64,000 bases of DNA from positions 124,001 through 188,000 of the forward strand of contig NIVC01000481.1 in assembly GCA_002269645.1 (NCBI GenBank), written 5' to 3'. Made by a program: the position numbers and the translations under genes. The notes under the pieces were generated by a model. It was given only the letters and a program-made list of their open reading frames with translations. It searched no databases and had not been told where the DNA came from. The DNA comes from Macrostomum lignano (Eukaryota). Of this stretch, positions 42,621-45,600 are shown piece after piece. Position 1 is the first letter of the stretch. Every line of letters starts with the position of its first letter.

Positions 42621-45600
42621 TCAGTGCCTGATAAGCCTCACAGTGAAACAGGCAATGGCGGCCAGAGCAAAGACCTGACAGGCTGACAAAGACCCCAGCT
42701 GACTGGCTGACTTGTACCAATCGTCTGGGGGGCAGTTATTGCCCCATCCGACACTGACTCCGTTCTCCTTGTTCTTGGCCGCAATGTAGGCCTGGAGCGG
42801 TGCGAAATAGTCAAGCAGGGGTTTGGCGCTGATCTGCCGTGTGCCGCTAATCTTGAACAGGGCCTCCTCCCAGTGCAGTGAGGTGCCGCTCTCCAGCAGG
42901 GCTCTGAAAGTTTGTTTATTAATAATATAAACATAAAAATATGAACTTAATCTCGTAATAACTTCACCTGTAGCTAATTGATGCTAATTACACCTGTACC
43001 TGATGCTAATTACACCTGTACCTAAAATTTATGCTAATTACACCTGTGCCTAATTGACGCTAATTACACATGTACATAATTGATGCTAATTTGCATGTAG
43101 CTAATTGATGCTAATTACACATGTAGCTAATTGATGCTAATTACACCTGTACCTAATTGGTGCTAATTACACCTGTACCTAATTGATGCTAATTACACAT
43201 GTAGCTAATTGAGGCTAATTACACCTGTACCTAACTGATGCTAATTACACATGTAGCTAATTGATGCTAATTACACCTGTAGAACATTGATGCTAATTAC
43301 ACATGTAGCTAATTGATGCTAATTACACCTGTAGAACATTGATGCTAATTACACATGTACCTAATTGATGCTAATTACACATGTAGCTAATTGAGGCTAA
43401 TTACACCTGTACCTTATTGATGCTAATTACACATGTAGCTAATTGATGCTAATTACACCTGTAGAACATTGATGCTAATTACACCTGTAGAACATTGATG
43501 CTAATTACACATGTACCTAATTGATGCTAATTACACATGTAGCTAATTGAGGCTAATTACACCTGTACCTAATTGATGCTAATTACACATGTAGCTAATT
43601 GATGCTAATTACACCTGTAGAACATTGATGCTAATTACACATGTAGCTAATTGATGCTGGATGCTGCTAGTGAATGTTAATTGCGACTATTTCGACTTTT
43701 GTGGTAAAAATTAAAAGTTCAAAAATAGACAGATTTTATTTGCAACTGAACATTTAATAACTGTTTTAAGGGGCATTCAAACATTCGGTTTTTTCACAAA
43801 AAAAATTCGACCCGCACTCACTTGAGCTTTGCGCCGGCGGCAGAGTTGCCGTAGATGCTGCATTTGTGAAAATTCTCCGTAACACCTGCGGCCTGGCACA
43901 GAGATTGGTGGAATTGAAACTGCAGCAGTAGGCTGAGAAAGTATCTGAAAATTATTCAAACTTTTTTATCAGCTAAAAATTCAATTTAAGCCGATAAGAA
44001 TTTTGTTTTAGCGGTGTATTGGTTGGCTTGGCAACAAGTGAAGAAAACAAACATTTGACCAAGTGCTATACCCTAGTTAGGAGGTATTTCGAGTTGATAG
44101 AATTTGTTTAACATTTTCAAAATGACTTTTAACTGTCTTTTATCAAAGTTTTTTCGTCTAATTTGAAAACTCTGCCATGCTCGTACAGACCGTGGCAACG
44201 ACACACGAAACCTGGCTATTTTAATTACTCAATTCTTGCATGAGCCAAGTTTCTAGCAGAATTATTCTCACAATTAACATCGAATATTATGAGACATGAA
44301 TGTCATGTAATGCGGCAGTAATGTCTTAAAACATATTTTTTTAAGTTGCACATGCAATTAACGTACAATTTTGTGTTTCAAATTGGCGCCAAATTTATTG
44401 TTTAAAGCCATAATAAAGCCACCTGAACTCGCCTCATGTACTCCACATTGGCAACCACGTGATAAATAGCGCCGGCATCGAAGTCCTCTTCCGATCGCAA
44501 CACCGGACTGGAAACCCCCATCAGTTGGCAGCGCTGGTTCACCCATTCGCTGTTCCACTGATTCTTGGGCACCTCGCCTTTGAACAGCTTGTACCTGTAG
44601 GTTTGTCGATGGTGTAAGTAGGCAGAGGTATACAAATTCTCCACAAGATTCTTTTTCTCGGGATTCCCTCCCCAAGACACCCATCGCCGAGATTCCCCAA
44701 TCCGGAACTTCCTTTCCCGAGTTTTCCCTTCCTGAAATTAAACATTCCCGGGATTGCCTTCTCGGGATTCCCCATCCAAGATTTCCCTTCCCGAATTCCC
44801 CTTCCCGGATTCCCCATCCCAGATTTCCCTTCCCGGATTCCCCTTCCCGGATTTCCCTTCTTGGGATTCCCCTTCTTGGGATTCCCCTTCTTGAGATTCC
44901 CCTTCTTGGGATTCGCCTTCCTGGGATTCCCCTTCCCGGGATTCCCCTTCTTGGGATTCCCCTTCTTGGGACTCCCCTTACCGGGATTCCCCTTCTTGGG
45001 AATTCCATTCTTGGGATTCCCCTTCTTGGGATTCGCCTTCCTGGGATTCGCCTTCCCGGGATTCCCCTTCTTGGGATTCGCCTTCCCGGGATTCCCCTTA
45101 GCGGGATTCCCCTTACCGGGATTCCCATTCTCGAGATTCCCACTGCCGAGATTCCCCCTGCCGAGTTTTCCCATCCCGAGATTCTCCTTTTCGAAATTTA
45201 CTCCTTGAAAATCTCTCTCCATAGCTTCTACCTGTAGTTGTCAATCAAATAACCAAAAGGCAGGTAGGCGGCCTTCTTCAAAGCCATGAGGAACAGAGAG
45301 TTCAGGTAGAACTCATCGGATTCGCTGTCCGATTCAAGCAGGCCGAGTTTTCTCAGATGCCCCGGGGTCATGACTGACAGCTCGATGGTGTCGCCGATGG
45401 CCTCGTGAAAACCGGGATTGGCGCCGCCTCGGAACACCACCGGCTGCTTCTCGTACTGCTGATAGTATTGAATGTGGCCCATCTCGTGATGAGTCACCGC
45501 CAAATAGTGGCCGGTAATCTCCGTGCACTGCTTGATGCGGAAGTCGCCTTTATCAGTGTAGAAATCCCAAGCAGACGCGTGGCAGACCATGTCAACTCCC

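Follow-up and report, generated by a model that had tools for sequence, protein, structure and literature searches.

Two ACE genes that differ by one intron

We analysed a 64-kb window, that is, the whole stretch of 64,000 nt taken from contig NIVC01000481.1 of Macrostomum lignano, which carries two angiotensin-converting-enzyme (ACE) genes arranged head to head, ACE-A on the minus strand and ACE-B on the plus strand. Both gene models were rebuilt from homology and splice signals within this window, and both spliced products match the Pfam Peptidase_M2 profile over positions 2-581 of its 581 (E = 5e-205 and 1.4e-198). The spliced coding sequence (CDS) of ACE-A, 1.9 kb long, is open in all seven exons, with neither stop codon nor frameshift, and keeps HHEMGH and EAIGD. 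The five ACE-B introns all have a counterpart in ACE-A that is equal in position and phase, and ACE-A has one additional intron, whose origin is the subject of this work (Table 1; a slash marks an exon-intron boundary here and in the text).

On the minus strand, the exon upstream of this intron ends at 45232 with ...GACAACTACAG, and the downstream exon opens at 44594 with GTACAAGCT. The intron separates the second from the third base of an Arg codon (AG/G), which makes it phase 2. Once it is removed, ACE-A reads DNYR/YKLF, colinear with ACE-B; if it is retained, an in-frame TAG is met at 45230-45228. The homologous position in ACE-B lies between 52875 and 52876 (CG/G), in the middle of an uninterrupted DHYRYKLF. 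The initial annotation of this DNA, which had been made from the sequence alone, described the 637-nt intron as present in ACE-A and absent from ACE-B, and its coordinates proved exact. The ends of the intron (CAG/GTAGAA...CCTACAG/G) are those of a U2-type intron, and taking it out leaves a continuous, conserved frame.

Two further features of the gene models were observed. Each ACE gene holds a 91-nt exon within its apparent intron 1 (46695-46785 on the minus strand and 49774-49864 on the plus strand), the counterpart of the M..IY...C region in other ACEs. ACE-A intron 4 (44432-43945, minus strand) is apparently of the GC-AG type (ATGAG/GCGAGT), and its homologue in ACE-B (53038-53138) begins with GTTGTC.

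Table 1. Positions of the ACE genes, the additional ACE-A intron and its parts, and the related array, in window coordinates
Feature	Position	Strand	Remarks
ACE-A, 7 exons	47665-47282, 46785-46695, 46588-46146, 45710-45232, 44594-44433, 43944-43822, 42903-42640	minus	
ACE-B, 6 exons	48616-48972, 49774-49864, 50659-51104, 52394-53037, 53139-53261, 54434-54749	plus	
Additional, most likely new, ACE-A intron	44595..45231	minus	637 nt, phase 2, GT-AG; termini GTAGAA...CCTACAG
ACE-A exon 5' of this intron	45232..45710	minus	carries HHEMGH and EAIGD
ACE-A exon 3' of this intron	44433..44594	minus	K at 4-fold sites to ACE-B 0.28, against >1.2 elsewhere
5' copy of the putative target, ATTGACAACTACAG/GTAGAAGCT	45223..45245	minus	last 14 nt of exon and first 9 nt of intron; 5' splice site
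3' copy of the putative target, ATCGACAAACCTACAG/GTACAAGCT	44586..44610	minus	last 16 nt of intron and first 9 nt of exon; 3' splice site
Unique pyrimidine-rich stretch, TATACCTCTGCCTACTTACACC	44611..44637	minus	separates the array from the 3' repeat copy
Intron body, 15-bp minisatellite, unit GGGGAATCYCRRGAA (ACE-A sense strand)	44638..45216	minus	centre homogeneous, both edges degenerate
Sister array, same 15-bp family	49010..49724	plus (ACE-B)	fills ACE-B intron 1 (48973-49773)
Empty site in ACE-B	52865-52888	plus	GAT CAT TAT CGG TAC AAG CTG TTC = DHYRYKLF, unbroken

A direct repeat at the two splice junctions

The two junctions of the additional intron resemble each other closely. Aligned in register, AACTACAG/GTAGAAGCT at the 5' junction and ACCTACAG/GTACAAGCT at the 3' junction agree at 15 of 17 positions, as had been noted initially with correctly quoted strings. 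The binomial probability of 15 or more matches is 1.6e-6, and it is 1.6e-5 when AG/GT is taken as given at both junctions. By comparison, the same 17 positions give 2-7 matches in the ten other introns of ACE-A and ACE-B, including 7 in ACE-B intron 3, which is likewise a phase-2 AG/GT...AG/GT intron. When 5' and 3' junctions of different introns were paired (110 mismatched pairings), the mean was 5.26 matches and the maximum 10. Likewise, an AG/GT-type intron of the DUF2152 gene (7779-8602), which holds a 48/110-bp array, lacks a junction repeat: a count by eye gave matches at the four AGGT bases and nowhere else. The objection that the junction similarity might be no greater than in other AG/G introns therefore fails, which favours gain.

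If one 2-nt indel is allowed, the repeat becomes longer: ATTGACAA--CTACAG/GTAGAAGCT (45245-45223) aligns to ATCGACAAACCTACAG/GTACAAGCT (44610-44586) with 22 of 23 positions identical. Over some 25 nt, the copies are set apart by two substitutions and an indel, a divergence of roughly 10%. We also searched the 120-nt flanks of the 35 tandem arrays in the window for direct repeats without anchoring them to splice sites, and set aside one trivial microsatellite case. The array in the ACE-A intron was the only one with a flanking repeat beyond shuffled controls (15 of 17; shuffles reached at most 12 with its own flanks and at most 14 overall), and no flanking duplication was found at the other 34.

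The resemblance to the exon ends sharply at the edges of this repeat. Beyond the 16 intronic nucleotides of the 3' copy, the next 30 and 60 nt are no more like the exon than chance would have it (1486 and 1951 of 5000 shuffles were as good), and the same is true beyond the 9 intronic nucleotides of the 5' copy (3479 and 4794 of 5000). In all, 25 of the 637 intron nucleotides are exon-like. The initial annotation had also likened the 3' end of the intron, read as LPTYTIDK, to the end of the upstream exon, read as LPFGYLIDN. The IDK/IDN part of this likeness lies within the true repeat and stands. The LP part is at chance level in the shuffles: it goes back to a CTGCCT hexamer that is not significant, and the ACE-B exon fits that intron segment slightly better. 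The similarity between intron end and exon that had been expected to extend past the repeat was thus no better than in shuffled sequence. From the repeat itself, the view that both splice sites derive from a single ancestral exonic AG/GT site is supported.

Such a repeat is exactly what the Rogers 1989 model predicts, in which an exon segment containing AGGT is duplicated in tandem. Published parallels exist in ATP2A1 (Hellsten et al. 2011; PMC3265369) and in a 24-bp AGGT-containing exonic repeat of fission yeast, in the terms in which PMC4974935 cites it. Under this explanation, a short exon-derived intron would have formed first, and a minisatellite that later arose in it or entered it would have overwritten the middle. 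The CTGCCT hexamer, which lies at about -31 in both exon and intron, is colinear as expected; however, more than a quarter of the shuffles (the same 1486) equal it. The duplicated AG/GT junctions are present, but an exon-derived intron body is not: the 22-of-23 identity drops to chance at once, without gradual decay, and the array that fills the intron is not exon-derived and has a relative 3.8 kb away. Moreover, a duplication of 23-25 nt would amount to a frameshift and be too short for splicing, so that a longer duplication and a second event that erased its middle would be needed. We consider this origin unlikely. The proposal of the initial annotation, a tandem AGGT duplication later inflated by repeats, therefore holds for the splice sites, which copy one AG/GT, and fails for the body of the intron and its abrupt edges. 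The sharp repeat edges and the unrelated filler are better explained by the alternative that it named, an insertion that left a long target-site duplication.

Gain in ACE-A or loss from ACE-B

To place the event, intron positions were mapped in outgroup ACE genes for which genomic DNA was fetched, the site being the (W or Y)-R-(W or Y) codon. There is no intron at the site in a fish contig (nearby introns MVRQ/GYN, DFR/IKQC, YDN/ETD, NLR/TKY, YMR/YF and ILK/KV), in a spider (NPG/FHEA, DDP/EG, DLR/LKY and PYI/...), in a shrimp (DFR/IKQC, NPG/FHEA, DLR/YEI and YIK/YF) or in an almost intronless mosquito gene. The site is also continuous in the closest homologue found, a gene 59% identical from a tandem ACE array with 44-nt introns on a eukaryotic metagenome contig, and seven open-reading-frame fragments from genomic assemblies, which end at the DLR/ intron, read straight across it. 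Three introns of the window genes, REK/NW, YMR/YF and KLK/AL, coincide with fish, spider or shrimp introns, which indicates that the gene structures are comparable and that those introns are old; by pattern, the positions in common with the genes compared are MxxQ/, YMR/YF and xLK/. The site is therefore empty both in ACE-B and in outgroups that share other introns. An intron at this codon in an outgroup would have spoken for loss from ACE-B, and its absence from all of those mapped favours gain. The contig of this closest homologue, ENA metagenome contig k141_23170 (positions 1-12300, with three near-identical contigs), carries at least five tandem ACE genes or fragments, with introns of about 44 nt. 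The ORF of the ACE-A exon had no exact match in the searched collections.

The age of the paralogues points the same way. ACE-A and ACE-B are 57% identical, and their 4-fold sites are saturated (90 of 151 differ, K about 1.2). Since the two repeat copies are only about 10% apart, the intron should postdate the duplication of the genes. Taken together, these sequence comparisons make it most likely that the intron was gained in ACE-A after the A/B duplication, and the earlier suggestion of a relatively young, lineage-specific intron, with a repeat that is fresh against an old A/B split, is upheld.

The converse, that an older intron was lost from ACE-B, for example by recombination with cDNA, and that the junctions are alike by chance, would suit the fact that there is a single paralogue pair, that intron loss is common and that this lineage has lost the ancestral ACE introns DFR/IKQC, NPG/FHEA and DLR/. 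However, none of the outgroups examined has an intron at the site, and a junction repeat with P of about 1e-6 would not outlast the A/B divergence (K about 1.2 at 4-fold sites). ACE-B, furthermore, retains a 101-nt intron just 54 codons downstream. Loss from ACE-B thus appears very improbable.

One exon departs from the general divergence of the paralogues. Between the 162-nt exon at 44594-44433 of ACE-A and its equivalent at 52877-53037 of ACE-B, 4 of 17 4-fold sites differ (K 0.28), against 61 of 100 upstream and 25 of 34 downstream, and a run of 38 nt is identical (44514-44477 in ACE-A and 52956-52993 in ACE-B). This exon is likely a gene-conversion patch, judging from its divergence, and would make up a single block of homology, its limits in ACE-A being two non-homologous introns, the additional one and intron 4. 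Conversion neither erased the ACE-A intron nor copied it into ACE-B. Because of the patch, this exon is unusable for dating.

Splice sites and integrity of ACE-A

The splice sites of the additional intron differ from those of its neighbours. Its donor is GTAGAA, whereas eight of the ten other ACE introns use GTGAG or GTAAG, mostly the former. The 16 nt before its acceptor (ATCGACAAACCTACAG) are purine-rich, like coding sequence. Both sites are weak by their sequence, and they look co-opted from the exon rather than evolved. The intron has G at +4 where the exon copy has C, and one may speculate that this G could form a G·U wobble with U1 small nuclear RNA. A polypyrimidine tract together with a branch site is predicted in the pyrimidine-rich stretch at 44611-44637, where a CTTAC would plausibly place the branch-point A 20 nt 5' of the AG.

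Weak splice sites, together with the indirect case for splicing, would also suit a gene that is dying, broken by an insertion that is not spliced out and is no intron at all. Yet ACE-A has seven open exons, matches Peptidase_M2 from 2 to 581 of 581 and has intact HHEMGH and EAIGD. The repeat copies have had time to diverge by about 10%, including an indel, and a neutrally evolving CDS of 1.9 kb should show stops or frameshifts by now. A dying ACE-A is accordingly hard to credit. Because the CDS is intact although the repeat copies have diverged to this extent, the gene appears to have been under selection since the insertion, and this selection would have required precise removal of the insert.

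The minisatellite within the intron and its relatives

Nearly all of the intron is a 15-bp minisatellite, as the initial annotation had recognized. TRF calls the array at 44745-45189 (30 copies, 81% matches); with its degenerate edges it spans about intron positions 16-594, or approximately 90-96% of the intron. An array of the same 15-bp family fills intron 1 of ACE-B, and BLAST finds many registers in which the two align, over 350-590 nt and with 72-78% identity. The two arrays are 3.8 kb apart and have the same absolute orientation. As the genes lie on opposite strands, the array is in the sense (G-rich) orientation in ACE-A and in the antisense orientation in ACE-B. A metagenome scan for relatives found none.

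Four possible origins of the array were considered and rejected. Growth of the array from the exon, suggested by the occurrence of CCCAAGAA in both, was rejected since that variant is central, and TCTCGG stands in the edge units as well as in the sister array. Movement of ACE-B intron 1 by reverse splicing disagrees with the opposite orientation of the arrays relative to transcription. Inheritance from the A/B duplication was discarded because the homologous intron 1 of ACE-A has (TGTC)n, and because the array would have changed orientation in an inverted duplication. Finally, break repair templated on ACE-B from the downstream-exon side predicts an inverted array.

Tandem arrays are a general feature of this DNA. 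There are about 35 in the window, belonging to roughly 25 families, and one occurs in every ACE intron longer than 400 nt; examples elsewhere lie at 35924-37003, 38767-39281 and 62599-63511, as well as at 31615-31772 and 33219-35464. At least three families recur at a second or also a third locus, at distances from a few kb to tens of kb, and one of these families is inverted. This recurrence suggests that arrays are copied locally in this genome. One tetranucleotide array recurs in two introns of ACE-A, oppositely oriented: read on the plus strand, it is (GACA)n in intron 2 (45751-46139) and (TGTC)n in intron 1 (46817-47262). Related to it is the (AGAC)n array at 26246-26574.

A second locus of the same family, and families at two or three loci elsewhere in the window, would also be expected if the insert were a mobile element with an internal tandem array, introner-like or mobilized by an enzyme of the long interspersed nuclear element (LINE) type, that made a long target-site duplication. 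The target duplication does enclose foreign DNA, and LINE-type insertion can yield target duplications of about 23-25 bp. Some introners, moreover, draw both splice sites from the target (PMC9860276). In contrast, we found no inverted repeats at the ends of the intron, no poly(A) or simple tail in the sequence beside either repeat copy and no second copy of the short non-array ends of the insert in the window. The absence of flanking duplications at the other 34 arrays is also unfavourable, and the sister array sits in an old intron of shared position, where no element boundaries were seen. A mobile element of this kind is therefore rather improbable.

A proposed route of intron gain

The additional intron probably originated at the DNA level in one event, in which DNA of the 15-bp array was inserted into an ACE-A exon and a target of about 23 bp containing AG/GT was duplicated. 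The continuous exon would have been hit between ...ATTGACAACTACAG and GTACAAGCT... by a piece of the local minisatellite, the empty site before insertion reading ATTGACAACTACAGGTACAAGCT. With the target of about 23 bp present on either side of the insert, its upstream copy would have become the donor (CAG/GTAgaa) and its downstream copy the acceptor (cctaCAG/G). With the first GT and the second AG as its ends, the intron spliced out would comprise the insert and exactly one copy of the target, and the frame would be restored. Because the duplicated target contained AG/GT, splice sites would have been ready at once and the insertion tolerable from the start. The array may have expanded after insertion.

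The insert would most likely have arrived when a staggered break was repaired, or when replication switched templates and copied nearby array DNA. In the latter case, the nascent ACE-A sense strand (the minus strand of the window) would have moved to the array, about 4.5 kb distant, and then picked up its old template again 23 nt behind where it had left off. Such a switch of the nascent strand predicts a copy in the same orientation together with a local duplication, as observed. Repair of a staggered break agrees with the recurrence of exon-terminal bases at the far end of the intron, where they enclose DNA of no relation to the exon. From this arrangement we infer both a single event, comprising insertion and duplication, and the origin of the filler DNA.

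Several points weigh against this account. The duplication, 23-25 bp here, exceeds the 4-12 bp of Daphnia neointrons (PMC4202315) and the 3-9 bp of introners (PMC9860276). Decay of the insert-target junctions has made microhomology unreadable. The case for the source of the filler is circumstantial, as a pair of arrays from the same family within 64 kb gives neither the direction of copying nor the spread across the genome. Splicing of the intron from the ACE-A transcript is itself deduced from the intact state of the gene. The best ACE match in the searched collections is 59% identical, and an intron already gained when A and B duplicated, and then lost from ACE-B, is excluded by the youth of the repeat alone, not by phylogeny. 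Lastly, the conversion patch blurs the dating, and the G-to-C mismatch at +4 of the repeat might stem from conversion.

A broader possibility, which we regard as improbable, is that tandem arrays are themselves mobile units, copied over a few kb, whether by template switching or via circular intermediates, and landing with long target duplications. If this were true, any target with AG/GT would yield a ready-made intron, and intron gain could be satellite-driven and transposase-free across the genome.

Other genes in the window

Outside the ACE locus, the window carries a gene of the DUF2152 family (5261-9292), a homeodomain exon (22186-22425), UFD1 (13026-14141) as a single open frame of 372 codons and RPL3 (10288-11744) in two exons. 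RPL3 is 78-83% identical to marine transcripts and assorted protostome sequences. Rfam found no RNA genes in the window. The structures of UFD1 and RPL3, along with the disappearance of ancestral ACE introns, point to a lineage that has lost many introns and retains large, array-filled ones.

Comparison with known systems and significance

In Daphnia pulex, neointrons are attributed to repair of staggered double-strand breaks (Li et al. 2009; 2014), and 4-12 exon-terminal bp recur at the far end of the intron (PMC4202315). As in those cases, foreign DNA lies in an exon of ACE-A and the coding sequence is unchanged once it is spliced out. The ACE-A intron differs from them in its repeat of 23-25 bp and in its filler, a minisatellite whose recognizable relative lies at a distance of 3.8 kb. 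With the Rogers model it shares splice sites that copy one exonic AG/GT, an unchanged peptide and a unit close in size to the 24 bp of fission yeast; unlike in that model, where the body is duplicated exon, the body here is unrelated array DNA and the exon homology stops abruptly. Introners (Huff et al. 2016; Gozashti et al. 2022) are multi-copy, make duplications of 3-9 bp and often have inverted ends, and some co-opt both splice sites (PMC9860276). The likeness consists in insertion and target duplication that give a precisely removable intron, but here there is one related array in 64 kb, with neither inverted ends nor defined element ends. Zhuo et al., in PNAS in 2007, are said to have described introns that arose from tandem arrays, with splice sites inside the repeat units of an exonic array. 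In those cases, as in ACE-A, the array is the body of the intron, whereas in ACE-A the splice sites lie in duplicated flanks outside the array.

The ACE-A intron thus exemplifies a known route of intron gain, clearly but in one instance, and is unusual in the length of its duplication and in a minisatellite filler with a neighbouring relative. Few well-documented intron gains in animals have the creating lesion still readable, and the mechanism is debated between tandem duplication, break repair and transposons. This locus unites an empty paralogous site, a long duplicated AG/GT-containing target that gives both splice sites and a filler with a likely local source. As a single locus it is illustrative rather than surprising: it offers a worked example of how any insertion that duplicates an AG/GT-containing target would be a pre-adapted intron. 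If many array-filled introns of this genome share the same signature, this would suggest the spread of minisatellites as a driver of intron gain.

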